39,624 bases of DNA from Bigelowiella natans CCMP2755 (GCA_000320545.1 ADNK01000338.1:1-39624), one strand, 5' to 3'; positions 7,250 to 38,150 are shown, counted from the first letter of the stretch. Notes: generated by a model from the letters alone, not told the origin. Numbers and translations are program-made.

Positions 7250-8400
7250 ATCGCTCAGCGCTATATTTTGCTATTTATCGTCAAATTACGTATTGTAATT
7301 CATGGTGAACTACGCATCATAACGGTCAATATTCATCACAGAATCAGAAGTTCATCGATAGGTTCTTCTACTAGCTAATCTATGTATAATAAACTGGGTT
7401 ATATGAATGAAACGCAGGGCTTAGGATATATGAGCAAATCGCTCAGTATGCATGCATTTAGATGCATATATCGATTTGCAGTCGGAGTACGTTGGCTAGT
7501 TGGCCTTGCTGGCGGTGATCGATGAATCGTTGGCCACAATGCCGTAATGCATGTAGTTTAAAGATTTATATTCAAAATTGTGAAGCACGCATTGCTAGAT
7601 TGTCTAGACTATATACTTGTATATCTTATTCTAGCTAGCTAGTCCTGCTGATCGATATGTTCGGTAGCTTGCAGTATCGTTCTTTTGAATGGGCGGCGTA
7701 CGTAAATTTATAAATTATATTACTGCCACAAAAAACAAAGCATCGATCGTCGCAAGCAAACCGCCACTTACCTAGCTATGTGTGTCTAGGTGTAGCTACA
7801 TCTAACATGAGGTTTTATGACTTAATATATGAATTCCAATCACTGATTGCCATAGAAACAACATAACAACGCGACGTGTGTCGCGCAGTGCGTGCGTTGC
7901 AGCTAATGCAGGCGGAAAATATATAGCCATTATTATAAGGCTGCTGTTGAAATAACGTTGTACAAAACTAATATTAATTAATCGCATTTATCTAGTAGCC
8001 GTAGAACTAGAGAATTGCATAGCTGCATTAATACTTAATTCATATTAAGGACAACGATTGAATAATTTCAAAGTATTCTTACATCCGTCTCATAGACGGC
8101 TCGCACGTGCGCGTGCGTGCTGCATCGGGACACATAGAACAGAGTACTAGAGTAAATAATGCGCCAACTTCAACATCAGTATGGAACATATTTAGTTCCA
8201 TATGTTTCATTCGTCACTACTAGTGAACTAAAAATCGAAAGAGGCCACTTTGTGTTGAGAATGCCAATTTAAGTTTCATTTTTTGTTTATCTCGTTACAT
8301 TCATTGATATATCATTCGTAGGCAATCTATATAAATCACGATAGCCAAGGCATGCAGCTGGGGCGGAGGAGGTTACTATACTCTATCCAAATAAGTAGCA
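7250..8400. other. Palindrome-rich tail-to-tail spacer 1 (tepsin / CN hydrolase)
   Basis: About 13 CTAG by manual count, CTAGCTAGCTAG at 7631-7642, ATCGATCGTCG at 7742-7752, no CC from 7207 to 7503, no microsatellite arrays, no credible ORF. Confidence 0.75.
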
Positions 8401-8494
8401 CAGCGTGTGATGGCGATGATGTTCGAAATTCCGTACGTGGTTTGTATCCGGTACCACCAATAGACACAATTACTTCGATGTTAACGCATGACTA

Positions 8495-9355
8495 CTATGC
8501 CAGCTCCAAGTGCCTTACGGATGCATTTCCTTGATATCCAATCTCCTGAAGCCCGTCTATTGTAATCTCTTGGAACGAGCTCGTCCCATTTCTCATGAAA
8601 ACCTCAGAGCTCCCTAGCGTCGAGACTAGCATTGAAACATTGAATTTTTTTGCCAAGTGCCCTCCAGTCAACCTCGCGATTGAAGGCACTCCTCCGACTG
8701 ACCATAACAGCGTCGTTGCACCTTGATCAATTAAGGAGTCAAATTGAGAATAGTCTCCAGTAATTGTTGGGTAAACCCCCTCGTAGCAAATAGCAACACC
8801 CCAGCGCCTTCCAAGGAGGGAAAAGGTCGAGGGGGCAAAGGGCCCGGATTTAAAGAATAGCATCTCGCTTGGGAAGAGGTGATGTTTGTGGTAGATAGAA
8901 ACTGCCCGGCCTTTTGAGTCAAATACAATTTCTGTGATACGACGAGATTTGTTTGCAAATTGGACGAAGATGTTTGTCGCGATTGCAATTTGGTTCTCCC
9001 TAGCGGCGCAGCTTAGTGCGGTCTGCTGCGGCGCGGTCACGTTTGGAGAGAGGCAAGGGTTGAATCCAATGGAAGAAATCAAAGGCTCGTAGTAAGTAGA
9101 CCATGAAGGCATTCCAGCAAGGCCATATCCCTCTGGTAGGAGCAGAATATCAGCTTTTGCGTCGGAGGAAGCAACAGAAGCTGCCTGAGTGTAGACTTTG
9201 AGGTTGCACTTGATGAGCTCCAAATTATCACTAGAACGACAAGCAGATTCACGCGACCAAGCACTAGAATCGTGTCCAGAGAGCACGGAAACATGGACCG
9301 CGAAGGAAAGAGGGGTGGTAATGGCGATAAGTGCAAGGGGGAGGGCAGCCGACAT
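8495..9355 (-). CDS. Secreted carbon-nitrogen hydrolase (nitrilase superfamily, vanin/biotinidase-like), intronless, 286 aa
   Basis: Uninterrupted ORF with a hydrophobic N-terminus (MSAALPLALIAITTPLSFA). Glu-Lys-Cys triad motifs: ADILLLPEG, YHKHHLF, GVAICYEG. Confidence 0.9.
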   Translation of the reverse strand: MSAALPLALIAITTPLSFAVHVSVLSGHDSSAWSRESACRSSDNLELIKCNLKVYTQAASVASSDAKADILLLPEGYGLAGMPSWSTYYEPLISSIGFNPCLSPNVTAPQQTALSCAARENQIAIATNIFVQFANKSRRITEIVFDSKGRAVSIYHKHHLFPSEMLFFKSGPFAPSTFSLLGRRWGVAICYEGVYPTITGDYSQFDSLIDQGATTLLWSVGGVPSIARLTGGHLAKKFNVSMLVSTLGSSEVFMRNGTSSFQEITIDGLQEIGYQGNASVRHLELA

Positions 9356-9515
9356 GGTGTCCTGCAGTTCGTAACACAGTTGTCGTTGTTCTCCAGAGAA
9401 TCTCCGATGATTATTTGAAAAATATCCTCTATTTATTTTCTACGACAATAACAAATGTCTATAATTCTCTAGATTTCAGATTTTACAAGGAGCGACTATC
9501 CAGAACCCATCCGCG
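9356..9515. promoter_or_regulatory. 160-nt head-to-head spacer, putative shared promoter of the two hydrolases
   Basis: Start codons at 9355 (-) and 9516 (+); promoter function is inferred. Confidence 0.5.
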
Positions 9516-10586
9516 ATGGTGCTGCGTATAGCCCCGACCCTCTTCATGAGCTGGTTTCTCTTTTTTCCCAAGATGAGCTCTGCTGACTACCCTTCATGCG
9601 CCCCTGGACTAACGTGCTCGAAAATTACCCCCTCTAATCACCCCAATATGCACTTCGATTGTGCTTATGTTCAACCTGCAAACGCTCGTGCCTTGGTCTA
9701 TCACATGCACGGTAACGACGGGCCGCGGTCAAAGGGAATGTTCTTCGATCTGATGCTACAACTTTCTGAGGCCGGTTTTAGTAGCTTAGCTTGTGACCAG
9801 CGGGGGTACTCGCCAGAAGCCTCTCCCAACGAAATGCCGGAGTATTATTATGACAAGCTAGTAGGCGACATATTCTCCATCGTCAACGCCTCTGGGCTAA
9901 ACCAGGACCCGGAAGGTAAATTCCACCTTGTTGCTCACGATCAAGGTGCTCGCGTTGGCTGGCATGCAATTGGCCTTGGAGAAGGCCGGCGCCGGTTTCT
10001 CTCCTTCTCTTCACTTTCGATCCCTCATTCGGACGTTTTCTCTGATGCACTATACGGTCCGTCAGCGGATAGTGACCAGCAGGCAGCAGTTCAGTATGTT
10101 CGGATGTTCATCCTTCCGAACTCCACCACTGTATACAACGACGCTATACTGAATACTGTTTGCAAGTCGTTCAGCCATCTTGATCAACCTTCTTGCCAGA
10201 GATCGCTTTGGTGGTACAATGGTGCAATCGACTCGGGGGCAGAGGCGCTCGCCCCTCTGGGCCCATACGGATACGTCCCCAAGTTCATTGGAATTCCACC
10301 AGATGTCCTGGCAAACATGACACAATATCCTCTTGATGGGGTGCCTCAAACGGTGAAGGTTGGCTACGTAAAGGAATTTCCAGTTTTGTTTTCTTGCGGA
10401 GCAGGGGACGGCTCTGACTTGTGCAAACCAAAATTTGGGGACCAGAGTGGAAAGCTAATTGAAAAATTTAAATATCTCCGGATGGACGCCCCTTGCTCCC
10501 ACAACATCTTGAAGTGCCCTGATGCAGCCCAAGTTCAGCAGCTCCAAGATGCGATTGTTGCTAACATACAATCAGTTTATGAATAA
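9516..10586 (+). CDS. Secreted alpha/beta hydrolase (epoxide hydrolase / dehalogenase-like clan), intronless, 356 aa
   Basis: Uninterrupted ORF with a signal-peptide-like N-terminus. Motifs: HG oxyanion loop (YHMHGNDG), DQRGYS, nucleophile elbow FHLVAHDQGARVGW, SLSIPH, candidate acid (GAGD) and His (CSHN). Confidence 0.9.
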   Translation: MVLRIAPTLFMSWFLFFPKMSSADYPSCAPGLTCSKITPSNHPNMHFDCAYVQPANARALVYHMHGNDGPRSKGMFFDLMLQLSEAGFSSLACDQRGYSPEASPNEMPEYYYDKLVGDIFSIVNASGLNQDPEGKFHLVAHDQGARVGWHAIGLGEGRRRFLSFSSLSIPHSDVFSDALYGPSADSDQQAAVQYVRMFILPNSTTVYNDAILNTVCKSFSHLDQPSCQRSLWWYNGAIDSGAEALAPLGPYGYVPKFIGIPPDVLANMTQYPLDGVPQTVKVGYVKEFPVLFSCGAGDGSDLCKPKFGDQSGKLIEKFKYLRMDAPCSHNILKCPDAAQVQQLQDAIVANIQSVYE

Positions 10587-10599
10587 TAGGATGATTGAT

Positions 10600-11760
10600 T
10601 ACACTGCACGCAAGCATAGTGGATTTATGGATATTGATAAGTAGCCATACATATTGCATCAAAGTGCTTTGAAGTAAGCATGGTGCTGTCGACATTGCAT
10701 GTACACTTGCTCAAACTGCAACACATTTTTTTAATTGTAGCAAAGATGGCAAGCAGCTCTCATTGTTTAATATCATGAAATTTTGCTTGTTGTACTTAAT
10801 CCAATAAATGCATGTGGCAACAGACTGATAGTCACAGAATTGGCCGCGTATCGTAAGTCGGAAAAAGTTCTAGTCCTAGCTACGCATCAACATTGCACTT
10901 TGCGCCCACTTCTGCTTGTACTTATTTAATTGTTTGCCAAGTCTAGCGCTTGCAAAAGTCGCTTATTTTCACGTTTCTGTCCGACCTGAATGCCGATACG
11001 AACGTCAGAGCCTTATAGATCATTTTCCTCGCTGATAGATTCATTGCTATTTGGCCAAAACTAGGAAACTAGAAAATGAAGTTGTGCCGCAAGCTAGCAA
11101 GCCCCAGCATGCTAGCATGCGTTGACTTATAGAGCTCGTATGAGTTAACGGGTTGTCTATATAGTCATAACACAGACAGTCTGACAGTCTGCATGACAGC
11201 GTTTTTTGAGACGGATGCAATGAAGTGATTAAATCTTTTCAGTAGGTCATCCTAATTTATTAGCGCTGCAAAGCAGCGGCTACGCACAGCGCTCAAGTTG
11301 CATCATTGCATTATTTGTCTCGTCTAATGCTATGTGTGCGATTGCGACGCGATGTGTAATGAATCAAATTAAATTTGTTCAATAGTCATATGATAGATCG
11401 CTAGATCGACACAGTATCATATATGCTTGTGTGCATAGTATGTATGTAATACGTCGTATGGTGTGCTACATGTCTATCACGAGTATTACATGTGTCTCTA
11501 TAATAATTCATTCTCATAACTAGATAAATCTGTGCATGTGTGTAAGACTGGTGTAATCAATGCAAATTAAATTTATTCGATCAATGGTAGGATATCTAGA
11601 TATGGCTAGATAGTCTAGCAGTGTGAAGCATATGCGCTATCTAAGTCTAATAGCATAGTATGCGCTAGTGCGTCTAGGTCTAGATGTGTAACGCAATACG
11701 TCTTTCTTGAGCATATAATAACACGGCGTATGTCATGTTGTTCGTTGGAAGGCGGCACAA
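10600..11760. other. Palindrome-rich tail-to-tail spacer 2 (alpha/beta hydrolase / rpl18)
   Basis: About 15 CTAG by manual count, GCATGCTAGCATGC at 11107-11120, no CC on the plus strand from 11253 to 11765. Confidence 0.75.
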
Positions 11761-12195
11761 ATTAGCCGGTACGCTACGATGGCGACTGCAATGCTCATCA
11801 GCCAAATTTTGCATGATAGCTGTAGATAGCTTCGACAATTTTTATTTTTCGATTGGACACGACAGTATGTGCTCGTACCGAAGAGATCGCTCAGCAGAGA
11901 AAAGTGAAATTATCATTCGATAGTTCTGTGTTACTAAGTGCACATTTTACGGACATACAAGAAACTCTATTTCATATTAATAATTTCGGGAATAAAGGAG
12001 CGAGTACCGAAGTTGTTCGATCACTTGTTCAATCATCGAGTAGTTTGCGAGAATACAAAGATAGCGAAGAGTGATCATCGAGTAGATACGTTAACTAAAT
12101 CGATTTCCCCCCACTATGATGTATGTGATTCTCATAAGGAGAGTTCCCCATACCCGTGACCCCGAATGATGATGCTATTTTCTGTATGTAAGCAA

Positions 12196-12852
12196 TTAAA
12201 ATTGAAGTCCAGCTTCCCTTGCCCCGTCAGCAATACCAGCTACACGCCCATGATATTTGTATCCGTTGCGGTCAAATACTACTCGCTCGATTCCCTTCTC
12301 CTTGGCTCTTTCGCCAAGAAGCTTTCCTACAATTTCTGCCTGTTCCTTAGGAGTCTTGTCAGCGATTTGCTCTTTCACCACTTTCTCCACAGTTCCAGCC
12401 GCTGCTAACGTATGGCCTAAGGAGTCGTCAATGATTTGGCCGTAGATGTGGTTATTGGATCTGAACACAGAAAGGCGTGGCTTCTCGGAGGTACCCTCAA
12501 CCTTCTTGCGGATCGAAAGTTTACGACGACTCCTACGCTCTTCCTTCGAAATTCGTTCGTTAATACCGTGACCAAACATAATGGCATCGCAACCAACGTC
12601 TCTGCTCATGGATGGTCTTAAGCCCTGCATGTGCATAGCCATAGGGGCAACAACCCCCCTAGCACCCACAGCTGAGAGGCTCAAGTCCCCAGCAGCAGCC
12701 CAGTTAGCTGTAACATAGCCCATTACGCATACACAACCAACTATAGCCCCAATGACAACTGCACTTAATGAGCTTCTTCGCTGAGAACTGAAACCACCCA
12801 ACATATTTTGCGTTGCCTCTGAGACAGGGGGGAGGGTTTGATAGGCGGACAT
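12196..12852 (-). CDS. rpl18: Nucleus-encoded plastid 50S ribosomal protein L18 with bipartite targeting leader, intronless, 218 aa
   Basis: The C-terminal ~120 aa are bacterial/plastid uL18 ([30 protein letters not shown]...[28 protein letters not shown]). The N-terminus has a hydrophobic segment ([17 protein letters not shown]) followed by an Ala/Arg/Ser-rich transit-like stretch ending RDVGCDA. Confidence 0.96.
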
Positions 12853-13523
12853 TCGAGTGGTGTGGGGAAAGGGTCTGATCAGACTTAAAGTCTTTCTCGG
12901 CTACATTATCATTTTGCAAATAAAGGACAAAAAATGGAGAAATCCATAATTTTCTTGTCGCAATAAATGAAATAAACGATATCAGAGTAAATATGCATGT
13001 AGCCGAGGAACACAGGAGCCTGGAATTACATAATCGCCGCCCCGTTGAACCGTCACTGACCGTCAGTCTCGGAGACTCTCTTTCTCGGAACATCTTTGCC
13101 GCCGTAAAGAAGTGCGGAAATGCGCACTTGGAATTCGGAATGTATTTGCTCTTTTTTAGTACCAACATATCGAGTTTCCATATGAAAATGAAGGTGACGT
13201 TGATTTTGGAACGTATTTGCGGTTTTATTTGCTGTCTCATGGGTAAATTGCACTCCTTTACAGTACGGTCAGCTTCAGATTTCGCACGTCATTTGGAATT
13301 GTCGGCAATGGAAGCCTGTCCGCGCCCCTGAGGAAAGCACAAGCTTGGCTTTAATACAGCGCCTATAGGCCCTCACGGAATCGGTGGACTATAAGGTTGC
13401 GTGATAATTGTTGTGTTTTCGGTTGTATCGCTCTCACTGCGCCTAACAACTCTTTCACCGGCTTTCGGACAATGCATCCCAGTCAGCAGCTGACGTTTTC
13501 ACGATGTGGTATTTCCAAAGGGG

Positions 13524-15319
13524 ATGGAGGAGCTCCAGAATGCCCTTCGGCTGTATAGCGTCGTCAATTCGATCGAATCTGACCTCAGATCGATATGCCT
13601 CGAGAGCCGAAAGAAAGGCAAAGGGATGTTCATGCAGCTGAAGCAGGTTACCCCCATCCCCAACCCCTGATGTTTCTTGGCGAAAGAATTTGCTCAGAGG
13701 GACTTCGTGTTTCCTTTTAGGCTGCGGAGAAGGTAATTGTACGGCTGCGAGGAATCCACGAGCAACACGCGGCTTTTGCACAACACAAGACCAACTATCT
13801 TTATCGTACAAACATGCTAAAGGAGAACCTCGATGCCATCCAGAAGGTCGGGTACTTGTAGAATGGGGGGGGGTCAAGTGGGGCAGCGAATTGAAGATGA
13901 CGTGGGGACGAGAATGGGAATTCCTTACGCATTCAAGCACTTTCGCTACCCATTTTTTTAAAGAGAAAAAATGTAATTAAATTGACGAGTTTTTGTAAAT
14001 GCTTAACAGCCCCTCAGTTGGCATTAATGCCAAGTTAGTCGTGCCGATTAGCTGCGTTGCAGATAAATTCTGTGCTGCTTTACCTGATATATCAAGTTTC
14101 AAGAAACATATCTGGGATGTTATTATTATTCAACAGGCAAGTAATGCGCACAACAGCATCGATAGGGACACAAACTACCAATATCAGGTCCCTTTTCTTG
14201 TGGCAATCATCAATATATCTCCTCCTTCCATCTTCCCCGTCCCCCCCCCCCTTTCCCTCCTTCCGAATCGATAGTTGAGGAAAGAAAGACACATTTCAAT
14301 TTCAATAAACACGGTTCTAGTATAGAATCAATTCAAGATCACAATCACCGACATCTTTCACAACAATTTCGATCGTTTCCCAGTACACGGAGGACGGCGA
14401 AAAGATGACGGAAGGCTACATGCGGATAAGATTACAATACCTGGACGAAGAAATGAAGAAGAAGGTAGAGGGATTCTCTGCGTGCTCCACGGCCTTCCCT
14501 TCAAAAAAATATAAGATTCACACCGTATTATTTTCACTTGGGTCTAGGATGATTAGATTCAATCAAGCATGCCGTTTATTGCAGCAGTATATCCTTCACT
14601 CAACCGCCCCCAACCCTCTCTCCTTACTCTTCTCCTTCTCCTTCTCCAAGGCGTTCATTTTCAGTCAGGATGCCCTCAACACGTTACGGTACAGAATATA
14701 CGACGGTCGTTGTCATCATCGTTTTGCAGTTATCGGAGCTCTTTTCTTGCACGCAGACAGTCACCGTCACCACAACTCAATAAAATTATTAGGTCCCAAC
14801 AAACGCTGCGTCCATTTCTTATAGCATGCGCAACGAAGTGGCCAGGGTAACAACACAGACACACCATTTCCTGTGGTTATAACCCCTTGTCAACCATGCC
14901 CGGTTTTGTCCCATGTTCTTACTTGCTTTTGTTGGCGATCCGACTATACAGCGTCACGCTGCTGGCTCTGAACGCAATGCAGCGTCTTCTGAGCATCGGT
15001 AGGAAATCACAATGAGTTGGCAGTGTTGACAGGACTATATATGACCACTATCGATGAAACAAATGCATGTACATTTGTTGTAGATAACGACATAATTGGA
15101 GTAATATCGTTCCTTTGAGGGACATGATCACTATTGCCCGAATACTCACAACTTTTTCGAATCAATCCCCGGCCTCACGCCCCCCCCCCTCTCCCCCTCG
15201 CTCTTTTATTTTTTTTTGAATTTACATGTGCACGTTTACAGGGGCCATTGTGGATACCCAGCCTGGAATTATCATCGGCACGCTACGAATTCAGGCTGAA
15301 ACTAAGCATCAAGTACTCA

Positions 15320-15411
<92 letters not shown>

Positions 15412-15984
15412 TGTTCGCACTCATACTAGCACAAGCAATACGATTGCTAAATGTTTAAGATGGCGAATCCATGATGTTCCATGTACAAAAAAAACAACCC
15501 GTAATTTCGACGTTCATCTCGATTTCCCACTTTGAAGAAGAAAGAGAAGAAGAAGAAGAATGAGAAGAAAAAGAAGAACAAGAAGAAATGATGATGGTGA
15601 TGAGGAAAGCTACTCCTTGATTAGCTACTCCATCTTTCACTGCGAACGTCTCTAACATCTCGCATTTCTTCCTCCCGGCTATTGAAGAAGGGAGAGCCTA
15701 CAGCGTGAATGTTCCACAAATGACGGACTAATTACATGATATCGATGATAACAATCACAAAGGGCGTCCAATTGAAGATCCTGCAAACGCTGACACTAGC
15801 TCTAACCCCTGTCATTTCTGCGGCAAGTGCTAACACCATCCGCCTCGCTGCTGCATCAGCTATTCCAAGGTGAGACGAGAGGAGCAACTCATATTCGCAT
15901 TGTTTCACACTAGGAAGAGTAGAGGAGGAGAACATTAGAAAAAATGTCCTCTCTCACTCCTTCATTTTATTATATATAAATATA

Positions 15985-16043
<59 letters not shown>

Positions 16044-17873
16044 TATTCTTATAGCGGACTCTACTCCTGAATTCTGGTCTCCCCCCCCCCCCTCTCCCCT
16101 TTCAGACCCACGTCGCTGCCGGGAGAAGACATGAAAGGAGGCGGTGAGCATCAGCCTGGCGTCGTGAAGAAGCATAAGATCGATTTGAACACGCCAAAAG
16201 AGTGAGTACCCGCAAGCTGCTCCCCACCCTTTTCATATCGTAAATAAGATGAAGTGCACAGTCAACGACTGGAGGGAGGTGGAAAAAAATTCTATTTGAG
16301 ATTGGATCCCAAAATGCAAGCGTGGGGATCAGTTATTTTACGAGAAAGAAATGGCGCTGTGTGCGTGCGTCCTCTTGTTACGGTTGGTACTGCGGAATAA
16401 TTAAACTTACTCTCTCTCTATATCTCTCTACCCCGCTCTCTGTGGAATTTTTACCCCCCCCCCAATATCAAGGCTGCAAGTTAGCCAAATCCCCCGCGCG
16501 GCAAGAATCTCCGACCTTGTTGATACGGAAGGTGCTGTTCTCCACCTCCCCCCCCCCCCCCCCCCCCTTCAGTAGCGGTTTGTATGGTAAGGCGTCTTAC
16601 GTTCTGTGCAGCGGGGCGAAGATGACAACGAATGTTCCAACCGCTTGATCCACTCGAATTAAATACTTAAATAAAAATAAAGTTCAATAAAAATAGAAAT
16701 AACAATAGCGGTATAAAAACTTTGCGGGGCTAACTTTTCCACAAACCTGCTACGCACGTGTTTGTCGTTAACTGCAGGGCTGGAGACGATCATGCTGCAA
16801 TCTCTATCAATATGCTTTAGGTAATAGTGTTAGTAATATAGAGGGAGGGCGATCATTGAGATAGAGTATTTTGCCTCTGCTTACTGTAGACTTCTTGGGG
16901 TATCTACCGCCGCCATCTATCACACGGCATTTGCTACCTTGCGACAGGTCGGTTAACGCAGTGTTTCCGCGTCCTGTGTTTCCTTCTATTGTTTTTGGAT
17001 GGCGCAAATGAGAAAATGCAATTTATCATATTAGCCTGACAACACACACACACACAAATACGTAATGCTTACAACACAGGTCGTTCAGCTGCTCTACGAT
17101 AGCGTTTCGCAGGTTAGAGAACGCTGAGAATATATCTCCAGACGTCGCCCTTGATGAGTGTTAATTGCAATCGTCAGTACAAATGAGAAATGGTAACACA
17201 TCAATCCAGGTGTTCCAGAAGGTGCCAGAACTAGGCAAAAATACATCCGGGGAAGAAGCAAAGCTAGACAAGCTTCCGCTCGAAGCAAGTAGGCTTGCCA
17301 CATTGTCTTGCTTTTCCTCCGCACATCTCAAATATCAGAGCATGGCTTGTGATTGCGGTCGTTGCGGTTAGAGTTTATAGAGTCTTCGTGCAAGGGCCAT
17401 AACCACCGAAATACCGATATTCGATGAATTGGAATGTAGATTTGATTTACATCTCCAATTCAAATCGTGTGAATCTTGGCTTTATCTCTCGAAAAAAATA
17501 TGTTTTTTCCATGCCCACTGCCATTACCCCCCCCCCCCCCCCGCCGCCCCCCTTTCTATCTCCCTCCTTTCTACACCATACACAAAGATGGCGAGAAACT
17601 ATTCATTTTTATCTATTATTTTTTGATTCTGATGGACATGAGAGAAAAAATAGGAGCCCTGAGGCATCTCCCTACTACCCCCCCCCCCCTCTTCCTCCCA
17701 CTTTTATTAGAAATGGCCTTTAAATTGTTCAAAGATCTATGCTATTTGGCCACTGCGGAGGGTACAAAGACGGAATGGCTAATGGTAACGTGTATGTAGC
17801 GCTCTCTGATCATATCCTCTTCTTTATCTTCGTCTGTATGAACGCGTGCGCGTGCGCGTGTGAGTGAGTGAGC

Positions 17874-17919
<46 letters not shown>

Positions 17920-18822: not shown

Positions 18823-18866
<44 letters not shown>

Positions 18867-20162: not shown

Positions 20163-20218
<56 letters not shown>

Positions 20219-20878
20219 GCGCGCACACACACACAAATGCAAATGCACACGCAGGGGCAGCTAAAGCGCCTACCTCGGCCGCGACGGTGACATCATCCTT
20301 CGCATCTACAATGCTATCCACGTTCGGGGTGAGGAGAGCGAATGCCCCGAGCACGCCCTCAACGGAGATAATCGGAGCCCACCAGACGTACTCAGGAGGG
20401 GGGGGTAAGCATTCATGCTGTTGATCTATGCTTGGATAATCATCTCTCACTCGGAGAAAGAGAAGAAGAAGAAGAAGAAGAAGAAGAGGAGGACCAAGCA
20501 GTCACTATTGTAGATGGTGTTTCGATGATGATGTGCATGGTCTTCGAGATAAAAACCGCACGATTATTCGCCTCGGAACGCATGCGTTGTCGCTATTAAA
20601 AATTTGTATATTCCCGACATAGGATTTTCCACCTTTAGTGGCAGTTCCCCCCCCCCCCCCCCTCTCTCTTTCTCACTCTCATACTGCCCCACACTCATCT
20701 CACATAAAAAGGGTGCATATACAAGGACTTACACCGTCGTCATCGGACCCCACGCCTGAAAGCCTGGGCGCCTCCATGTGGAAAAACCACCGCTCGGGGA
20801 GGGGGAAGTCCAAAGGGCTTGCCCTGGTTTCCGACCTCTCCCCCCCCAACTACCCAGAAACCTAATGACCCACACACA

Positions 20879-20932
<54 letters not shown>

Positions 20933-24481: not shown

Positions 24482-24485
24482 ACAC

Positions 24486-24530
<45 letters not shown>

Positions 24531-27500: not shown

Positions 27501-28172
27501 AAAGTGTTTGAAGAGTTGAAGCTGCTGTCGGTAGATCCACGCTCGCAGGTGTGTTATGTCAGCCACCTCGAGAAGAAGTCAGGAAATTAGAGAAAAGCAA
27601 AGGCGATGTTGTTCGCCTTTGATCGCTCGAATTTCGGAACCTGTCCCGCTTTTTTGGGGCAAAATTCCCACGATATTGTAGTCGTCGGCTTGGTTTTGCT
27701 GAAGCGTCATGCATGGACAATGATCTGTGGCGAATTTTGAACGGCTGCGTATTCGAAAGTTTACTACTGATATATCCTAGCCTCCCCGTGAGACGATTGA
27801 TTTGCATTGAGTTGTGGGGTGGATAATGAAGTGGAGAGACTTTTTGGAACGCCTCTTTGCACTTTTTCCTCGTTGACCCCATCACTCTCGGCGCACACGC
27901 ATAGGTGCGCACAAGTGCAATAAAGACTTTCCAGTCGACACTCAGCGCTCACGGTATATGCAAGCGTTTGCGTGTGATAATGAGAGAAAAAGGGTAGATG
28001 TTTCCAAGAGTGTTTTCGAGAACGTGCGCTAGTTTTTACCACCTTGTCGGTCGCTAATATGTGTTGTTTCACACTCGCAAAGGAGGGAGAATTAAGAGCG
28101 AGACATGGATTTTGTGCCTGAATACCATCATTTTTCCTTTGATGGAAGGTTTGTGTGTGACAAAGTATAAAA

Positions 28173-28210
<38 letters not shown>

Positions 28211-28477
28211 GATAAATATTTGTCAGGAGTCTTGTTCGAATTTTCTTGTTGAATTTTGTTGGAATAGGGTTATATGTTAGTTTCTTCTACTTCCCGATTT
28301 TGATGATCTTTTTTGCCGCATGCCTCTTAACGTACTCTTAGAGCTCCTTGACCACAGCAAGGATAGCGAGCGGACTGACAACAAAGACAAGGAGCTCGGT
28401 TGTAGCAATGCGTCGATAGATACATCGAGAGATTATTATTATGGCGTGTTATAGAAGCAGTAGCCATTGTCCAATAC

Positions 28478-28518
<41 letters not shown>

Positions 28519-29791
28519 AAAGAGGGGACATCGAGCATGTGGGAATATATTTTATAGATAGATCCTCTCTCCTTCCCTTCCTCCTACCCCCCCCCCCCTT
28601 CCCCATCTAAAACGCCACCGCGAGCAATTCTCGCTCTCAGACATGAGAAGATGAAAATCGGCGTTTATCACATTGCGGTGAGCCAACAACGTCCTCGCTG
28701 CTAAAATATTAGGCAAGGACAGAGGCACTGGCGAGGCTGTATTAATGATGGTGCACTACTCGAGAGATACGGCGCAGAAGCAATGGGACGAAACACGTAC
28801 AGACAGACAGCCTTTATTCGTGTACCAACATGCCGCATTTAATTCGATTCATGTATTTCTGTCGTGGCTATATTCAGGCGTCTTCGCGCTGCGCGCTATT
28901 GCCGCGATGATCGGCGAGTTCATTCCGATAATGAACGAATCTCGAGAATTTCCCAAGGTACGTTTATGTATGCGGTTTTTGAGTAGAGAGGAGAAGTGAG
29001 CTTTTCCATTTCCCAACAAAAATGAATCTTCTTCAAAACATCCACGTTTGTGCGAAAGCTTGCCGACTCTAACCGTTGCGTCGATATGTCGTCGATGTGC
29101 CTTTCTCCTTTCTGCATCCTGGCCGCTCCCGAAGGCCTGGGCCAAGTTTCTAAAGCACATTGAATTCTGCGTGCTGAATAGCAATTCAGAGGTATATGTG
29201 ATGATGATGATAATGATGATAATGATGATGATGATAATGAAGATGAAGATGATGATGATGGTTGTAATGATAGTCGTAAATAATCTGCAGCATTACGTGA
29301 TCTGTTCTATTCCCTTTATATACCTCGAAGATAGCTTTTCCATCGTGCTTCCTTTCCTTCCCTCCAGGTCGCTACGAATGCAATACTGAGCCTCAAAACG
29401 GCGATGACGTACGCTGGCACTGTCACCGTCATCAAGAAGTCTCGAGTCGTTTGGGTAATAATTATACAAATGATAAGACCGTTGATTCTAAGCTGCGTCA
29501 CAGCTGTTTCTCATCAACGTCGTTTCTTCATTCATCAGGGGATGGTACTCCAGCTGTACGTGAATCTCACTAAAGATGCTATCTCTCGAGCCCCTAGATT
29601 ATTCGTCAGTACAGGCAGCAAGGTTATTTCTTCTGTTGTTGGGAAGAAATTTTGATTTGGATGAGCCGCAGCTTCATGCCACTTGACATGCTTACAGTGG
29701 TCGCTAAGTGCGGGGGAAACCGTGCATTCTCTGAGAAAATCAGAGATGGGATTTGCCTCCAAACACAATGCTTTCAGCTGAAGTGTGATTG

Positions 29792-29824
<33 letters not shown>

Positions 29825-31084
29825 GCTTATTGCAGATTCAGGAGGAGGAAGTCGAGCGTTGGATTGCAGTTGTGACTCAGCTGGTGAGGGACACGCATCC
29901 ATCCACACTCCGATTACTACTTTACGTTTTCTAAAGCAAGAGCGGCGCTGTGAAGGCGAGATTATGCAAATGACAATTATTATTAGTACTGTTGTTGTTA
30001 TAACCATCAAATACTATAAATAGGTTCAATCGTTGGGCCCGATCGTTGCAGCTGTGAGGCCGCATCTTACCCATGCGGACATTTCAACAATAGCTTGGTA
30101 GTAGTCGCAGCAGCCAGCAGCATCATATGCGCGCGAAGTAGACGATGTTGGTCATTGTTCCTGCAGATTAGTGTTTTCCTCATGTCGCACGCGTCGATAC
30201 ACCGCTGTTGTAAATAAGCGATCTTTTGAGAGCATGGATGCAATACTTTGCCCTAGGATGCTACTTGCTAACACTAATATTAATTCCTATTATTCTTCTC
30301 TCTCCCCCCCTTTCCTTCTCTATCCGCTCGATCAGGATTTGCCATATGATATTGTCCATCAACACTCAGCCGGTTGCATTGCGGAAAGGTCAACGTTAAA
30401 AAGAAAATCGATGTCTGTTTTCCAAGGCGCTGATGCTGTACATGAAATCGATGCGAAAACTCTCTAAAATCTTTTCCTGATTCGTTTTTGGTCTAGATGA
30501 AGCGTCTTCCTCTTCGGTCAAGAGTTCACCGCTGATGATGCGACTCCAACGTCAGAAATGCAGCAACACAAATCTACGGTAGTGGTAGTAGTGGTAGTAG
30601 TAGTAGTAGTAGTATTAGGTAATAGCAAACAACGTTATGAATGAGAAAGCAACCAGGCGAATTGAGTTCTACGGGGGGGAACGGATAACGCCTCCTCATT
30701 TTGATGATGCCTGGAAGCTTCTTAAAAGTGATTGCCCTTTAATTGTCCATCAGCGTGAGTGTGGTTGGCGTGATGGAAGTGCTCGCTCCGCTCCCCCCCT
30801 CGTTGTGGAACAACATCATAACGCAGCTGCTCGATTACGTGCTAGATCGGCCTTCACAGGTGGGTGAGCAGGAAATGCCTAAAACAAAACAAAATCAATT
30901 AATTTCCGATGTATCCGATGCAGATATGCAATCGGAAGAGGGCCAGATCTGACTCCCTCTCAGGAATCAACGGCGACGGCGCCTCAGGAGACAGACGGAC
31001 TACTAGAAACGAGAGAGCTGGTGAAGACGACATCTCTGATGCCTCATATGCGGTAGGTATCACATGCACTCAGGAGATCTTGAA

Positions 31085-31127
<43 letters not shown>

Positions 31128-31640
31128 TTAAAGCGGGTCGTTCGGTATCTGCGCTGCGATTTTCCCACCCCCCATTCAATTCTGCCTTTTTTTACGCCTT
31201 TTCTACGTAACGGGGTGGGAGTGTCAATGCGATTTTGATTTTCAAAAAGAAAAATAAATTAGTAAATAGAAAGAACATTCTCAAATCGACCAAAAAGCCC
31301 AAAGACGTCGAGCGCGATTGCATTGTGTGAAGGAGTTATTTCACCACTTGTATCGATTTTTGAATTCCAGGATTCAGCAACGCGTATGCGAGCGGCTGAC
31401 GATGAGAAAGAACTGCTACGAGTTTACACGAAAATTGACCAGAGCGTCCATGGTGAGGCCTTTACATTCCCCGCAAGTGTGCTCGATGTTTCCCCCGTAC
31501 ATGACGCATCGTTTTGCTTGGATGGTGGCGAGAGGATGAGAGTCGCCTCATCGCTTGCCGTATTATTGACCGATGATGCGAAATTGCAGAGCTCTGGAAC
31601 GTCTTTGATGCTGTGAAGGATGAGGAGGACAAAAGTACAC

Positions 31641-31681
<41 letters not shown>

Positions 31682-32594
31682 GACAGACAGACCGAATAAC
31701 CCTAAATTCCAACAGTCCAACAAAGGTTATAATGCCATTGTGAGCTCTGTTACTTAACGTCCTTGGTATTCTTGAAATAGACAAAGTCGCAGAACGTGTT
31801 CTCCCCCCCCCCCCTGCCCAGGAGAAGACCTTTCACCTACAGGTCAGCGAAGGGTGTAACAGTGAGACGATAATGATGCTACTGATCAAGATGATGATAA
31901 GCGAAGTAGAAAATACGTGGGTATTAATCACACACGACATACGTTTTTGCATGATAGGTGCTAAAGACGCTAACGACGCTATACTGTGAGAAAGCACCGG
32001 TATGAAGCAATTAAAAGATAAACAACTAACATGGGCATGCAACTGCAATACCATATGTTCTTCAGCTTGGATTAAAACGAGGGAGGAGGGGGGGGGTGGG
32101 GATTGGTTTTGTGTTGCGAAATCGCTGATAGTTGTCGGAGAGGGGGATATAAACTTTAAGCCTCTGAGCTATGATCATGTTCAGAGCCAACCGTTGTTGT
32201 CCATTGTGTGTGTGTTGGCGTTGCGCTGTTCTCAAATGCAATTATAGCAATAACAGTGACATGTGATTCTGCTGTGTTGTGTATATATATGTGAAGGGAT
32301 TTGTCAAAAGCAGCAATATGATGAAGGTGTCGGATGCACTCTCCTCCCTGGTAAGTGCCTCGAAAAGTCACTATTGTCAAAATTGCATTTATAATGCAGT
32401 TGGAGGAGGGGGGGGGAGGTCTAGTAGCGTGTACATGTTGGGAATGTATGGAAGAGATGCAGATTATAGTATACATTGATGGCACTTGACTATTTTCCAT
32501 TCTAATACTACTACTATCTGATTTTTATATTCAGATTCTCAACTCTTCGTCGCCAGCGTGGAGATTAGCATTAACACTCCCGCACAGGTATATA

Positions 32595-32668
<74 letters not shown>

Positions 32669-33387
32669 GCGTATGTGTGCTTCATCATATCCGTGAATGT
32701 ACGCATCTGTTTGTTAGAGCTCGGAATTTCGAATTAGTCACAGAAGCTGTCGTGGCGTTGATCAAAGTAATAATACTCGAATCTTCACCTTCGCTATCGT
32801 TCGTATTGGCCTCGGCTTGCCTGTGTTTCCCCGTCAAACACACAACGCACGCATGTATAAGGAAATCTAATGAAGCGCATATGTGCGAGTATTGCTTCGA
32901 TAAGTGTGTGTCGTTGATGAGAGTTACTAAGTAAAGCACGTGTTTCTCCATGAAGGTGTTCGCATCGGCCCTGCCATGTATGCAATACGACTCCCAACAG
33001 CACGTAGACGCGATATGGAAGAAGGTCGTTTCGCGTCTTTTCTTCGTCTCTCGGCCCGTTGTAAACAGAGAGAGATGCCGCGTGTGCCAGCACGCGTGTG
33101 AGCGACTGACACACACTTTTACATACGAATGGAATATTGGACAAATGGGAGAGAGGGAGAGAGGGAGAGAGGGAGAGATGTGGGCTAGCATACCCAATAT
33201 ACCGATATCTTGCCTACACACACAGGTTGTGGCCACAACACGTTCCTTACTGCTGACATCGAATATAGAGACGCTTCTCGAGAAGGTGATTAGATTTGCG
33301 ATCCCCTCCCCCCACCCCTTTTCTCACGATGCTGTGATTTAGATCGGAAAAGAAAAGAGACGTAATCCCGAGATTACTGTACATATT

Positions 33388-33432
<45 letters not shown>

Positions 33433-33817
33433 GCTGTATGCTATACATACTTCAAACACGGTCATCAAATCTAGAACAAGGAGAAGAAAGACGGCAACGT
33501 CAGCGAGAGCGATGACTCTCAATTGATCCCGTTGTGGATTAACGCACAATCGCACGTGGTGGAAGGACTTGTTAGCGGTAGTATGCCCTTTTCTGACCGG
33601 AGAGTTGGATGTTGTATTTTTCCATTTTTTTTAACAAATAAAGTAACGATTAAACGATAGCTGTGCCACTGCATTTTGGGTTGATTTTGACTCAAACCGT
33701 TGTCGCAGGCATCCTACCGCATTCGAAACCGGCCTCGTCGCATATACAGACGAATCTTTTAGCGCTTTTAGGTATCTGATTCCGATTTGGTGTTCCGGCA
33801 AGGGCCGTGCTTATCTA

Positions 33818-33868
<51 letters not shown>

Positions 33869-34796
33869 TCTCCCTCTCCTTCTATTTGTAAGGGCTGTGC
33901 AAGTATGGCTATGTTAAAATTAATCAACCTCATTCTTTGAAGTAGTTGTCTTGATTGAAGAGAAGTCGATTTATCAGAAGTTTTCAACGGCCTTACTTCT
34001 TGCGAAGTCCTTCCTTACGTGGTTGCTTGTGTTATTCTTCCCTATCCCCCCTTCTCCACTAATTAGGAGACGTGGCGTGTGATAGGCTGTCACAGGACAC
34101 GAAGATGAAGCACAATAAATCGTAATGCATATTTTCATGTTTGTTTTTCATGTTACACTTATCTACAAACCTGCGCAAGTGAATATGTGTATGGAAGAAG
34201 ATAGGTAAATTGTATTTTAGGATTTCCATGTGCAAATATGCCTCTCTTTGTTTAGCGTGACCGGCGTCCTCCTCAGCCCCATCCTCGCCATCTTCCTTCT
34301 TATATTGTTCTACCCAAACATCTATCTTTCAGAGGAAGTGTCGCGTTGATGCACGAGTGTTTGCTTGGCCTTTTCACCCTCTGCCACCAAGGTGCGGTTT
34401 TGAGCGTGCGAGAGGGAGGAATAGGGGGGGGGAATACAGAGAGTTATCGAAACATTAAAGATAGATAGTTGTAGTATCTTATGTTAACAACGCTCATTCG
34501 TGCACTCGCACTTATCACTCACAAATCTGATGGGAAAAGGAGGTTCAAAGGAGACGACGCACAGCTGCTACATGTATATGGCGCATCTTGCAGGTAGCAT
34601 CATCGTTGTAGATCCATCAGGAGGTTGCGCGCGCGTTCCATGCACACAGATATGCTAGATATGTGAATGCATGTCAAGCAGCCGAGAGCAGTGCGAGAGT
34701 GCGGAAATACTGGAAACAGATTTCAAACATTAACACGATTCTACCATCCCTTAGCCCCGCTCCTCTTGTCTCGTTGTGAGGAGTTATTGGTACTTA

Positions 34797-34849
<53 letters not shown>

Positions 34850-35891
34850 TATTTGTGTGTGTGTGTGCGTGTATGTGTGTGTAACAAATTTCTGTTTTAT
34901 TTCAAGAGATTTGTACAGCATAAATGAGCGTTGAATGCCTTGCGGATTAGATGTGCCTTCGTTTTATTGTTTCTCCGCTGCGGTCACAGGCACATTGCGC
35001 AAGCACAATCAATTCGTTTTGATTATTATATGGCATTTTGATGGTTTTCAACCAGACAACATACATACGATTGGAACGCGGGCCTCAGTCGTCAGGAGAG
35101 GCTGAAAGTAAAGGCGATGATAGCACAAAGGTGGTGGCAAATGCAATGCTTTCCATGTGTTTTTCGTGTGATTCGAAGAGACGTTTCGAAGGATAAGTTC
35201 TGTCCCGCGACTTCACGAATGCTGTTGTCGCAGGGTAGAACCATCCTGCTTTTTCTTCGCCGTCGTTTGAATTTCCGAACTGAGCATCTTCGTCTTTGTG
35301 CCTCTTTCTCGTTCTATATTCTGGATTAAGTCTTCGTCGCAGCAGCAGCAGCAACAACAGCAGCCATCCATTGAATTGAGGTAAGATTTCTTCTGGAGAG
35401 AGTATTATCTTTAAAGGGGGGGGGTTATGTGTGGGTCACTAACACACGTACGAACTCACACACCGCGCGCGCGCTGAATAGTTCCCCAAATCTAACGCAA
35501 TTTTTGCTTTCATCGTCGTCATCATCATCGTCATCCTGACAAGGGGTATGCACATACTATCATCGTTGTCACCGCAGGAAGGAGATCCGTTTTGTGCTGA
35601 AACAGCTCAAGAACCTATCCCTACATCCGCATGTATGTGAAAATAGAACACAGCACATGTTTACATAAGACAGCACTTTACAGTTTTGTTGGTGGTGATT
35701 CCCATAGTTTGAAGTGTCAATATTAGGCGCGGGTGGGGGGGAGGGTAGCAGGATAAGCAGAATCTTAGGATCATTCACAAATCAAACATTCCTAACTCTC
35801 TGCTCCCTATCGTGTCTTCATGTCTCTCTTCTCAGGTTTCGAAGCGCATCTACACTACAGACGGGAAAAGTCCCCCAATAGTGGCATCTTC

Positions 35892-35928
<37 letters not shown>

Positions 35929-36764
35929 CAACTACCATCCTCGTCATCAACAAAGCCTCCAGTTTCTATCCCTCCCTCTTCCTCTTCCTCATCCTCCTCC
36001 TCCTCCCCCCCTCCCGTCACCGGGGACGCTCCAACGGCAGCGATAGAAACATCAGCAGCGCCGGTGAAAGGTGTGATCAGAAGAACAAAGAACAATGAGC
36101 ATGTGTACCAATACGGGTCAAAGCCCCGTTATCTTGTAGTAATTCATGTTGTACTTCTGCGCTTGCTGCATGATGGAGGAAACAAAGTAAGATTTGCATT
36201 GCCTCCCCTTCCCCCTCTCGTCCCCATCCATAATCAGATGGTGAGGATAAAGAGACGAGCAAGGAGGATGACTCCAAGCAGGAGGAATTAGATCAAGAGG
36301 CAGTTCAGGAGCGAAACTCTGCGGCCGCTGCATCATCGACATTGTCTTCATCGGGTGCTAACCTAGGGTTTCCTCTCGAGCATCCTGGTAACAGCCAATA
36401 TTGCTGTTGTTTGGGGGGGGGGGGGGGGGGGGGATGTAGGGTGTGAGCTCCATCTACTAGCCAGTGACTTCGTCTTGTTTTTCTGATGGTAGAATTTAAG
36501 CAATATTTCGCCTATATATTTCGAAATTTGCAACAAAAATGGTACTTACCCTTTTATACACGTACGTTCGCAGGGGGGGGAGACGATGCGCTCCGATTAA
36601 TACCACAAACCCATAATCGAGGACATTTGTTGAAGCTTTATCCCGTGTTTTGCCGATGTATAGGCGTGCAAGATCAGGGTAGTTCTGAAATTATGTATTA
36701 TACTAATGCTTTCGTGGGCTCTGCCTTCGCATAGACACACACATGTCATATATCACATATCTCA

Positions 36765-36802
<38 letters not shown>

Positions 36803-36946
36803 TACGTGTAATTCAATTTTTGCAATTACATGTGCATGGATATTTACAATTTTTGAACCTCATTTGTAGGAATTCGAGAAGCTGTGATGGAGATCATGCT
36901 TCTCATTGGGCAAGAATTCGGCATCATTACTCCAAGTGTCAAGTAG
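13524..36946 (+). CDS. MON2: MON2 (Sec7-family-related endosome/Golgi scaffold), roughly 80 exons
   Basis: Exons trace colinear MON2 motifs: IESDLRSICLESRKK...AAEKVIVRL (13524-13846), LRPFLIACATK...LALNAMQRLL, VQLKILQTL, TAFATLRQ, LFKDLCYL, ISECEMLLSIF, SYDMQPPATKVF, VLAALSYLL, FVESLCKFALP, LKALLSIAHN, FALNKLL...NMHR, LQLITDDFL, LLWSISD, VDPRSQVRTSA, VHYSRDTAQKQWDET, LLLSRCEELL, KEIRFVLKQL, HLLKLYPVFCRCI. Last exon GIREAVMEIMLLIGQEF...TAG at 36944-36946. Several internal junctions are ambiguous. Confidence 0.93.
15326..15407. repeat. Compound (CA)n(GA)n microsatellite in a MON2 intron
   Basis: Directly visible; a similar compound repeat lies at about 20871-20931. Confidence 0.95.
15972..16041. 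repeat. (AT)n microsatellite in a MON2 intron
   Basis: Directly visible; similar (AT)n arrays at about 22-61, 18827-18860, 23375-23404, 28178-28206, 31088-31122, 34807-34844, 38867-38903. Confidence 0.95.
20152..20233. repeat. Compound (CT)n(CA)n microsatellite in a MON2 intron
   Basis: Directly visible; similar at about 31640-31681. Confidence 0.95.
24345..24528. repeat. Microsatellite cluster (GT)n, (CT)n, (CA)n, (AT)n in one MON2 intron
   Basis: Four dinucleotide arrays in under 200 nt. Confidence 0.95.
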
Positions 36947-37099
36947 TTTCTCTGGAGTAGAGAGTAACATCAAGTTGCTTTTTTTTAAAACCACTATAGT
37001 GCCACGATTACGCATTTCACACATGCATGCTGCGCAATGTGTAGCGCACAAACAGTGTGTTCGTTGTTGATGAAAGATCTTGTGCTTGACATTTGATTT

Positions 37100-38150
37100 G
37101 CACAGCAATGATGATGCTGGAACAGCCCAGCTCTAGCTAGCTGTCATAGAAATGACGCATGCCCATCCAGCCATGATCATATATATTATTATATATGCTA
37201 TTACTATGTCTATTATGAGATAGACACGTAATATCATATATATATTATATATGCTCACGAATGATTGACAGATTTCCAGTCTCACCTGGTCCCAATTGAA
37301 TCAATGAATGATCACTTTTTGCTTCAGTTAGCCACTGTGGGACGCTGCTTGGCTAGTTGTGATGCTCACCGCAGACCGCCCACAGGGTGCTCCAGTGCTG
37401 ACAGCTGACAGCCTGGCAATGCACTGACAAGACATCGCAATGATTTTTGTCATTGAGGCGCTGCTGCACGCACACACACCTAGACATGCGGGCATGCTAG
37501 CATGCTTGTTTCCCATGTAGCTCTTGCGGAACAATGATCGGATGTCAATGACACTGCCTCTGGAACTGCTAGACTGGTGTGGCAGCGAGCCAGCTAGCCA
37601 GGCTAGCAGGCGAAAGCATTCTGTCCAAGCTAGCAAGCACACCAGCACACTCTAGCACTGCTAGACTGGCACAACACCTGTGTCTCATCATGCTGAGATC
37701 GCGCGTGCATGCATGTGGGCTCATCTTGCTAGCTTGTCATGCTAACATGCGTTGCTGCTGAATTCTTCCAGTCTAGCTAGCTAGCAGTGCGTCGTGTCGC
37801 GATGATCCCAGCATTGCACATTGCTAGATTGGCTTGGTCTGCACATAGCTCATGCATGCATGACCACGAGCTGGCGAGACTTTGTGTGACATGAGACGAC
37901 GTGCATACACATTGCATGTTGTTGACGTGCAATGCTCTGAATGCACAGCGATCGATCGTCGTTGCAAATGCCACGTGCATGGATGCGCAGCTCTAGAGCT
38001 AGACAGGCACATCCATCTGCGCTAGAGCGTGCTAGCGTGTGCGCGCTCATGCATCGCTAGATCGGTTGCATGCTAGCATGCCATTCAGCATGCGAGACAT
38101 TGTCTAGCTTGCTAGGCAAATGTCTTGTAGGACGCACACATTTTAGTATC
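37100..38150. other. Palindrome-rich tail-to-tail spacer 3 (MON2 / acyl-CoA dehydrogenase)
   Basis: About 21 CTAG and 19 CATG within 37480-38115 by manual count; GCATGCTAGCATGC at 37492-37505 and 38068-38081; CTAGCTAGCTAG at 37773-37784; ATCGATCGTCG at 37951-37961. Confidence 0.8.

Follow-up and report, generated by a model that had tools for sequence, protein, structure and literature searches.

The nuclear DNA analyzed here is a 39,624-nt stretch of Bigelowiella natans CCMP2755 (GCA_000320545.1, ADNK01000338.1:1-39624), which we refer to as the window. Its genes meet tail to tail at three places, and the spacers at these junctions carry short scars of the form N4-CTAG-N4, a CTAG core between two identical 4-mers, which are the main subject of this analysis. 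The window is intron-dense and has a G+C content of 45.7%; the value published for B. natans is 45% (PMC12730881), and the sizes of exons and introns likewise agree with the figures published for that species. A tepsin-like gene on the plus strand (3027-7164; ENTH exon at 3027-3251, VHS-like part within 5374-6381, stop codon at 7162-7164) faces an intronless carbon-nitrogen (CN) hydrolase gene on the minus strand (8495-9355; PF00795, 1.2e-12). Beyond a head-to-head spacer, an intronless alpha/beta-hydrolase gene on the plus strand (9516-10586), matched exactly by a transcript, faces an intronless minus-strand gene for organelle-type ribosomal protein L18 (L18p; 12196-12852; PF00861, 1.5e-44). 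After a second head-to-head spacer comes what we infer to be one long, intron-dense gene on the plus strand (13519-36945), with its first exons at 13519-13846 and a last exon that ends ...GIITPSVK* (stop codon at 36943-36945), and it is followed by a further minus-strand gene to the right of about 38.3 kb. The window thus holds three tail-to-tail junctions, at least two head-to-head junctions and no tandem junction.

Composition of the convergent spacers

A preliminary description of this DNA had claimed that a distinct class of sequence occupies each tail-to-tail spacer, and both base composition and a Markov track recovered such a block at all three places. The limits of the blocks are change points of a cumulative score. 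Block R1 (7237-8360) lies between the tepsin stop (7164, plus strand) and the CN-hydrolase stop (8495, minus strand), block R2 (10519-11872) lies between the alpha/beta-hydrolase stop (10586, plus strand) and the L18p stop (12196, minus strand), and block R3 (36991-38632) follows the last exon of the long gene and has the gene right of about 38.3 kb as its right-hand neighbor, with the signal strongest over 36991-38300. The class begins 73 nt past the tepsin stop in R1, at the hydrolase stop in R2, and 46 nt past the long-gene stop in R3. At the L18p end of R2, the 324 nt 3' of the stop codon (11872-12196) fall outside the class, whereas at the other examined stops the class starts within 75 nt, indicating that it is not simply the composition of 3' untranslated regions (UTRs). 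The class was also said to be missing from head-to-head spacers, and the two that could be placed are indeed ordinary in composition (9356-9515, without scars, and 12853-13518, without CTAG). The class is therefore present at 3/3 tail-to-tail junctions and at 0/2 placed head-to-head spacers; the window offers no tandem junction for comparison, and within it a class specific to convergent junctions cannot be separated from one that lies downstream of any 3' end.

Sliding counts per 500 nt gave 17-47 occurrences of CTAG, CATG, TGCA and AGCT taken together in the blocks versus about 3-14 elsewhere, and 10-30 occurrences of CC and GG versus about 45-75. Expressed as strand-symmetric dinucleotide odds (rho), GpC stood at 1.75, 1.77 and 1.76 in R1, R2 and R3 versus 1.08 in the rest of the window, CC/GG at 0.66, 0.47 and 0.47 versus 0.96, and AA/TT at 0.71-0.89 versus 1.04, while ApT and CpA/TpG were raised. 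CpG was not depleted in R1 (rho 1.28) or R2 (rho 1.07). Tandem Repeats Finder (TRF) placed none of its 71 array rows for the window inside the blocks, the introns being full of arrays; the blocks had been described as poor in CC and nearly free of microsatellites. A leave-one-out log-likelihood track under a second-order Markov model allowed any two blocks to recover the third and no other stretch of the 39.6 kb; the track was marginally positive only at 22.05-22.5 and 29.85-30.3 kb, and both places are without a perfect scar. Along the plus strand at 11253-11765, CC is nearly absent (1-2 per 340 nt) and GG is less depleted, an asymmetry that is local. Deamination in R-loops, which predicts a switch in CC-versus-GG strand polarity across the blocks, was considered and rejected because no consistent pattern was seen.

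The description of the blocks as rich in palindromes held only in part. Relative to the rest of the window, the blocks are denser in CTAG (7.6-fold), GCTA (3.9-fold), CATG (2.7-fold), TGCA (2.4-fold) and AGCT (2.1-fold), but palindromes 6-10 nt long are in excess of a first-order model only in R1 and R3, not in R2, and order-3 composition largely accounts for them. CTAG was the only palindromic tetramer in the blocks that also lay above its maximal-order Markov expectation (z = 6.2). A few words, CTAG and TGCATG foremost, are thus what mainly makes the blocks palindrome-rich. The preliminary description had proposed comparing the spacers by BLASTN and repeat finding. Sensitive BLASTN between and within the blocks gave no significant alignment, and repeat finding returned only motifs of 14-24 nt that are the scars themselves; with no alignable similarity between them, the blocks do not form a repeat family.

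N4-CTAG-N4 scars in the three spacers

The flanks of every CTAG in the window were examined, and a perfect scar was defined as a CTAG with identical 4-mers on its two sides. Flanks were identical at 4/4 positions for 26 of the 53 block CTAGs and at 3/4 positions for 9 more, versus 0/64 and 2/64, respectively, in the other 35.7 kb (Fisher p = 1.3e-11 for flank identity). All 26 perfect scars fall within R1-R3. Order-3 Markov simulations that kept the CTAG count led to an expectation of 0.44 +/- 0.61 perfect scars; the same simulations gave 4.1 +/- 2.0 one-mismatch scars, versus 16 observed, and two-mismatch scars were at background level. Beyond the perfect scars, about 12 can thus be added as copies with one mismatch, some of which are nested or overlap. 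An unbiased scan of repeat length against core length brought out two arrangements and no others, period 8 (4+4, z = 14.6) and simple period 4 (z = 6.6), and there was no excess in the blocks of other core lengths or longer remnants. When all 256 possible cores were compared, CTAG alone stood out (24 cases, every one of them in a block), and the cores ranking next were microsatellite artefacts; the core of the perfect cases is CTAG in 26/26. Identity of the flanks does not extend to the fifth base beyond chance (8/26 on each side).

The duplicated 4-mers are not random. Of 27 targets, 23 have A or C at position 1 and 24 have G or T at position 4, which amounts to a weakly symmetric preference, 5'-MNNK, often CNNG, and the commonest targets are CATG, CAAG/CTTG and ACTG/CAGT. 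As a result of this symmetry, scars tend to read GCTAGC or TCTAGA and add GpC steps to the spacer. Peeling, the removal of the 8 inserted bp, uncovered nested and overlapping events with targets offset by 1 nt, as is predicted if insertions occurred sequentially. Scars make up about three quarters of all block CTAGs and cover 25% of the R3 core (37290-38125), and the perfect ones sit mid-spacer, about 330 to more than 500 nt from the flanking stops that were placed, the gene to the right of R3 being excluded from this measure. As controls, contigs of other, GC-richer eukaryotes were obtained via homologues of the alpha/beta-hydrolase. These contigs are without the block class, and scars were found at 0/22 CTAGs in one of them (L002) and at 1/9 in a locus represented by two samples (L003 and L004). 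The single control scar, CCCT-CTAG-CCCT at L003 16557-16574, comes from an unrelated small eukaryote, on a contig with 64% G+C, and is probably a chance occurrence in a C-rich context. Together, these data show that the scars are 8-bp insertions with a 4-bp target duplication, that they arose sequentially and with a target bias, and that within the window they are confined to the three spacers, where at least about 40 such events can be counted.

R1 contains six perfect scars and one with a single mismatch between 7492 and 8154. The perfect ones are TTGG-CTAG-TTGG (7492-7503), ATTG-CTAG-ATTG (7591-7602), CTAG-CTAG-CTAG (7631-7642), whose target was an earlier CTAG, GTGT-CTAG-GTGT (7782-7793), AGAA-CTAG-AGAA (8003-8014) and AGTA-CTAG-AGTA (8143-8154). 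R2 contains six perfect and five one-mismatch scars between 11057 and 11687, the perfect ones being CAAG-CTAG-CAAG (11090-11101), CATG-CTAG-CATG (11108-11119), ATCG-CTAG-ATCG (11397-11408), ATAA-CTAG-ATAA (11516-11527), ATAT-CTAG-ATAT (11592-11603) and TGCG-CTAG-TGCG (11661-11672).

R3 is the richest: between 37163 and 38115 it has 14 scars that are perfect and 10 with one mismatch. Single perfect scars are CATG-CTAG-CATG (37493-37504), ACTG-CTAG-ACTG (37565-37576), CAAG-CTAG-CAAG (37626-37637), CTTG-CTAG-CTTG (37725-37736), ATTG-CTAG-ATTG (37820-37831), AGCT-CTAG-AGCT (37989-38000), CGTG-CTAG-CGTG (38028-38039), ATCG-CTAG-ATCG (38053-38064) and CATG-CTAG-CATG (38069-38080). Two pairs overlap with a target offset of 1 nt: CCAG-CTAG-CCAG with CAGG-CTAG-CAGG (37590-37610), which peels to GCCAGGCG, and CACT-CTAG-CACT with ACTG-CTAG-ACTG (37648-37668). 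At 37769-37788 the scar is nested, CAGT-[CTAG-CTAG-CTAG]-CAGT, and its outer part is seen only once the inner one has been removed. Decayed scars in R3 have the core CCAG at 37163, 37388 and 37638 and the core CTGG at 37867.

These structures explain the longer words that the preliminary description had reported as shared among the spacers, all three of which sit exactly where it had placed them. The 14-mer GCATGCTAGCATGC, found three times (11107-11120, 37492-37505 and 38068-38081), is a scar at the CATG inside GCATGC, an event that converts GCATGC into the 14-bp perfect palindrome GCATG-CTAG-CATGC. The word CTAGCTAGCTAG, the scar at 7631-7642, is a scar within a scar, since an insertion into CTAG yields (CTAG)3. 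The shared words are independent products of one insertion process acting on the same short targets and do not reflect homology.

DNA beneath the scars and other features of the window

We distinguish two layers in the blocks, the base composition beneath the scars (layer 1) and the scars themselves (layer 2). Peeling 45 perfect or one-mismatch events reduced the density of CTAG in the blocks from 13.6 to 4.0 per kb, the remainder of the window having 1.8 per kb. After this treatment rho(GpC) was still 1.70 and rho(CC/GG) still 0.55, CATG, TGCA and ATGC were still about 2.5-fold enriched, and the top word was TGCATG/CATGCA, at 6.5 per kb in the blocks versus 0.73 per kb (9-fold). Layer 1 is thus rich in GpC, CpA/TpG and ApT and poor in CC/GG and AA/TT, and TG, GC, CA and AT, the dinucleotides enriched in it, are precisely the ones that make up (TGCA)n. 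The period-8 signal was gone after peeling and a weak period-4 signal stayed. The idea that older layers of CTAG scars built the whole composition was rejected, as peeling abolishes period 8 and scars with two mismatches do not rise above noise. The scars thus form a fairly young layer on top of DNA of already unusual composition.

Layer 1 may stem from a motif for 3' ends or termination, from palindromic 4-mers growing by duplication, or from staggered breaks of the type made by topoisomerase II (Top2). The blocks have about 3 times the density of plain N4N4 tandem duplications seen elsewhere; many of these are (CATG)n-like and could be products of slippage. A sense copy of TGCATG at 10696-10701 ends 14 nt upstream of the 3' end (10716) of the alpha/beta-hydrolase transcript, and on the basis of its position TGCATG may be regarded as a candidate 3'-end processing signal. 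Other copies lie at 37024, 7449 and 7548, and on the minus strand at 8351 and 38048. Five of six genes have a sense TGCATG 80-290 nt past the stop, a count that is not significant alone given the density of the motif.

R3 differs from the other two blocks in a further respect. Its core (37290-38125) is a TpA-erased island lying under scars: TA occurs 27 times versus 46.8 expected, and 22 of the 27 are inside CTAG. The 26 peeled events of the core account for 208 of its 836 bp. Before peeling, rho TpA was 0.58 and rho CpA+TpG was 1.80; after peeling, they were 0.14 and 1.98. R1 and R2 are not depleted in TpA (rho 1.13 and 0.99). TpA-specific hypermutation of T/A to C/G has been reported for foreign DNA integrated in B. 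natans, with cut-offs of <= 0.43 for rho TpA and >= 1.52 for rho CpA+TpG (Mettrop et al. 2026, bioRxiv 10.64898/2026.01.13.699255). The R3 core lies beyond both cut-offs once its scars have been removed, and R1 and R2 do not; the preprint makes no mention of CTAG, of flank duplications or of convergent spacers. Among the core-mutated scars of R3, 4/6 read CCAG or CTGG, which is what CTAG becomes when TpA changes to CpA or TpG. Older R3 scars thus appear to have decayed from CTAG to CCAG or CTGG, in the direction of the published hypermutation, and since 4/6 of them did so, the simpler reading is that the CTAGs of the R3 core, although they look as if spared, are younger than most of the TpA erasure and were inserted afterwards. 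In mutation-accumulation lines of B. natans, two of the de novo insertions in the same preprint's supplementary tables are 11-bp units ending AACA, TGTTTGTAACA and TACGCGCAACA.

Several other features of the spacers were noted. An element of about 45 nt is common to R1 (8050-8100, minus strand) and R2 (11195-11245, plus strand), with the core TGAGACGGATG(T/C)AA(T)GAA; both copies match GACGGATGTA with at most one mismatch, the fold is no better than that of shuffled sequences, and R3 has no clear copy. At 11175-11191 the 8-mer GACAGTCT stands in exact tandem duplication and is followed by GCATGACAG, a period-8 event that, unlike the scars, has no CTAG. Just past the 3' end of the long gene, at 37173-37260, lies a nested inverted repeat, AT-rich and about 85 nt long, for which a strong hairpin of -31 kcal/mol is predicted (z = -4.8 versus shuffles); it could be a foldback, an insertion resembling a miniature inverted-repeat transposable element (MITE), or a terminator hairpin. 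No RNA gene was returned when the window was scanned with Rfam and for tRNAs.

Among the genes, the alpha/beta-hydrolase is matched exactly by a 1203-nt transcript contig (L001) from a JGI-hosted transcriptome sample, whose 3' UTR covers at least 10587-10716. Its homologues include proteins of Bigelowiella natans (52% identity) and Chlorarachnion, and many are annotated in bacterial style as pimeloyl-ACP methyl ester carboxylesterase. The three intronless genes are clustered within 8495-12852, bracketed and separated by R1 and R2, and all other genes of the window are extremely intron-dense. Exact-protein look-ups for transcripts of L18p and the CN hydrolase returned no record. Across 13519-36945, coding on the minus strand was sought and none was convincing; a reading of the first exons by eye as MON2-like was not confirmed by any tool. 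Pfam searches on 30 pieces of open reading frame from the long gene and its flanks matched only the ENTH exon, a search of PDB sequences with one N-terminal exon of the long gene gave no match, and a codon-usage map did not discriminate small exons.

Possible origins of the scars

A duplicated target around a constant palindromic remnant is the classic architecture of an excision footprint. The scars combine a target duplication of fixed length, a constant core and a symmetric target preference, the last being expected of a dimeric transposase. The sequence features therefore argue, with moderate confidence on our part, that the scars are excision footprints of a cut-and-paste DNA transposon with a 4-bp target-site duplication. 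At each visit, the 4-bp target N4 would be duplicated, and the exit of the element would leave N4-CTAG-N4, with the CTAG core presumably derived from its termini. On departure these could contribute CT and AG, or else a self-complementary 4-nt CTAG overhang that is annealed and ligated; the near-absence of variant footprints suggests the latter. Restriction to convergent spacers might arise because these are the sole places in a compact genome that tolerate a resident element with local hopping, or the element might target the chromatin or topology of termination zones. Selection on an 8-bp scar would not by itself readily account for the absence of scars from abundant intron DNA; this points to targeting or to strong selection against the transient insertion.

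Known systems offer partial parallels. Tc1/mariner elements leave a footprint in which a few terminal transposon bases stand between two copies of the target duplication, for example TA-CA|TG-TA. The scars resemble such footprints in having a duplicated target around a short, constant, palindromic remnant, and would share with Tc1/mariner the staggered cleavage inside the element ends, the end joining and the tendency to re-insert locally. They differ in that the duplicated target is not TA but almost any 4 bp (MNNK) and the remnant is CTAG; they are also far more uniform and far denser (26 perfect in 3.9 kb) than is usual. When piggyBac excises, 4-nt 5' overhangs pair with each other and are sealed without a seam; the overhang is the TTAA target itself, and no scar remains. 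A comparable 4-nt stagger with repair by annealing would explain the near-invariant outcome seen here, but in contrast to piggyBac sites the scars keep a duplicated target and an extra CTAG. Target duplications of 4 bp are known for the Sola, Chapaev, Ginger and Academ superfamilies; this likeness concerns the length of the duplication only, to our knowledge none of the four leaves CTAG, and the window contains no transposase. Convergent strand-switch regions of kinetoplastids, to which the preliminary description had loosely compared the spacers, are likewise places where transcription units meet tail to tail, but they carry base J and histone variants between polycistronic units, whereas the genes here are monocistronic. 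We know of no comparable scar structure at kinetoplastid strand-switch regions.

Several observations weigh against a transposon origin. The window holds no donor element, intact or partly excised, that combines matching ends with a 4-bp duplication. We know of no described superfamily with CTAG as its canonical footprint. Perfect scars number 0 in the 35.7 kb outside the blocks, intron DNA included. The scars also do not explain the composition of the blocks, which persists after peeling, and no period-8 remnant of older scars lies beneath them. With regard to present-day activity, the indels of the mutation-accumulation lines, as given in the available supplement text of the preprint (bioRxiv 10.64898/2026.01.13.699255), contain no CTAG string.

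Metagenome scans with an exon word and with a scar-spanning pattern that allowed empty and filled sites returned no match to window sequence, and a search of the literature on CTAG footprints, palindromes between convergent genes and chlorarachniophyte transposons found no description of such scars or spacers.

The same duplications might instead be written by the host, through a domesticated transposase or integrase or through Top2-like 4-nt staggered breaks made under the torsion of converging transcription, with ends filled in and rejoined to N4N4 and CTAG sometimes added. A process of this kind accounts naturally for the restriction to convergent junctions, where Top2 is expected; a 4-nt stagger is a Top2 signature, and N4N4 duplications are about 3-fold denser in the blocks. 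Moreover, trapped Top2 gives rise, via end joining, to de novo duplications of 2-4 bp in mutant or drug-treated yeast and in tumours (bioRxiv 10.1101/2020.05.03.075358; PMC8795545). These include 4-bp tandem duplications from filled-in 4-nt breaks, but they insert no constant tetranucleotide and have not been described as building spacer DNA. Fill-in of a staggered break yields N4N4 and provides no source for an invariant CTAG, and the N4N4 units of the blocks lack the MNNK preference of the scars (3/10), so that we regard a host origin as unlikely. It also seems improbable to us that the blocks work as cis-elements and form a zone of bidirectional termination or insulation in which the composition of the underlying layer (TGCATG, no runs of C or G, many stop-containing CTAGs) is under selection and the scars are incidental. 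The start of the class 0-75 nt from three stop codons, the 9-fold enrichment of TGCATG after scar removal, its position 14 nt upstream of the 3' terminus of the one available transcript and the recurrence of one composition in three unrelated sequences all speak for a function at 3' ends. However, the blocks show neither sequence conservation nor an Rfam family, the one recurrent element (about 45 nt) has no significant fold, the 324 nt after the L18p stop are not of the class, and selection does not explain 4-bp flank duplications.

Two further candidates start from the preliminary description. Deamination of 5-methylcytosine, which was to have produced CTAG from CCAG or CTGG and TpG/CpA from CpG, or another context-dependent bias of point mutation in untranscribed DNA, would be consistent with the depletion of CC/GG and the enrichment of CpA/TpG; context-specific hypermutation does exist in B. 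natans, and the composition of layer 1 has no other explanation so far. As the source of most CTAGs, deamination is refuted by the perfect 4-bp flanks at 26/53 of them versus 0/64 elsewhere and by the nested scars. Twenty-six perfect flank duplications are beyond the reach of point mutation, the published bias destroys TpA and scars decay from CTAG to CCAG/CTGG and not the reverse, and neither R1 nor R2 is short of CpG (rho 1.28 and 1.07), making a mutational sink very improbable. We give equally little credence to a decayed dispersed repeat or satellite family inserting at convergent ends. Short words common to the blocks, the weak 4-nt period and the element of about 45 nt in R1 and R2 would fit such a family, but sensitive BLASTN gave no significant alignment and the only repeat motifs, of 14-24 nt, are the scars. 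What survives of that suggestion is the signal of a mobile element, one that would have left footprints rather than copies.

An extension of the transposon origin is a tentative idea that we hold with some doubt: an undescribed B. natans mobile element, or a domesticated nuclease derived from one, directed to convergent termination zones may itself build the palindrome-rich, CC-poor spacer in a self-feeding manner. Each cycle of insertion and exit would duplicate a preferred target, and the spacer would thereby become a self-generated safe harbor.

Together, these results recast the palindrome-rich class as a countable event, an insertion of 8 bp that duplicates a 4-bp target. They also illustrate that short perfect palindromes common to several loci can be convergent products of one insertion mechanism and need be neither homologous nor binding sites. 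In R3, CTAGs that are younger than the mutated background would provide an internal clock for TpA hypermutation. If the scars are indeed excision footprints, the convergent spacers of B. natans would form a dense, datable archive of transposon visits, with tens per kilobase and none in the abundant intron DNA of the window, in which transposon targeting or selection on transient insertions would be directly measurable.

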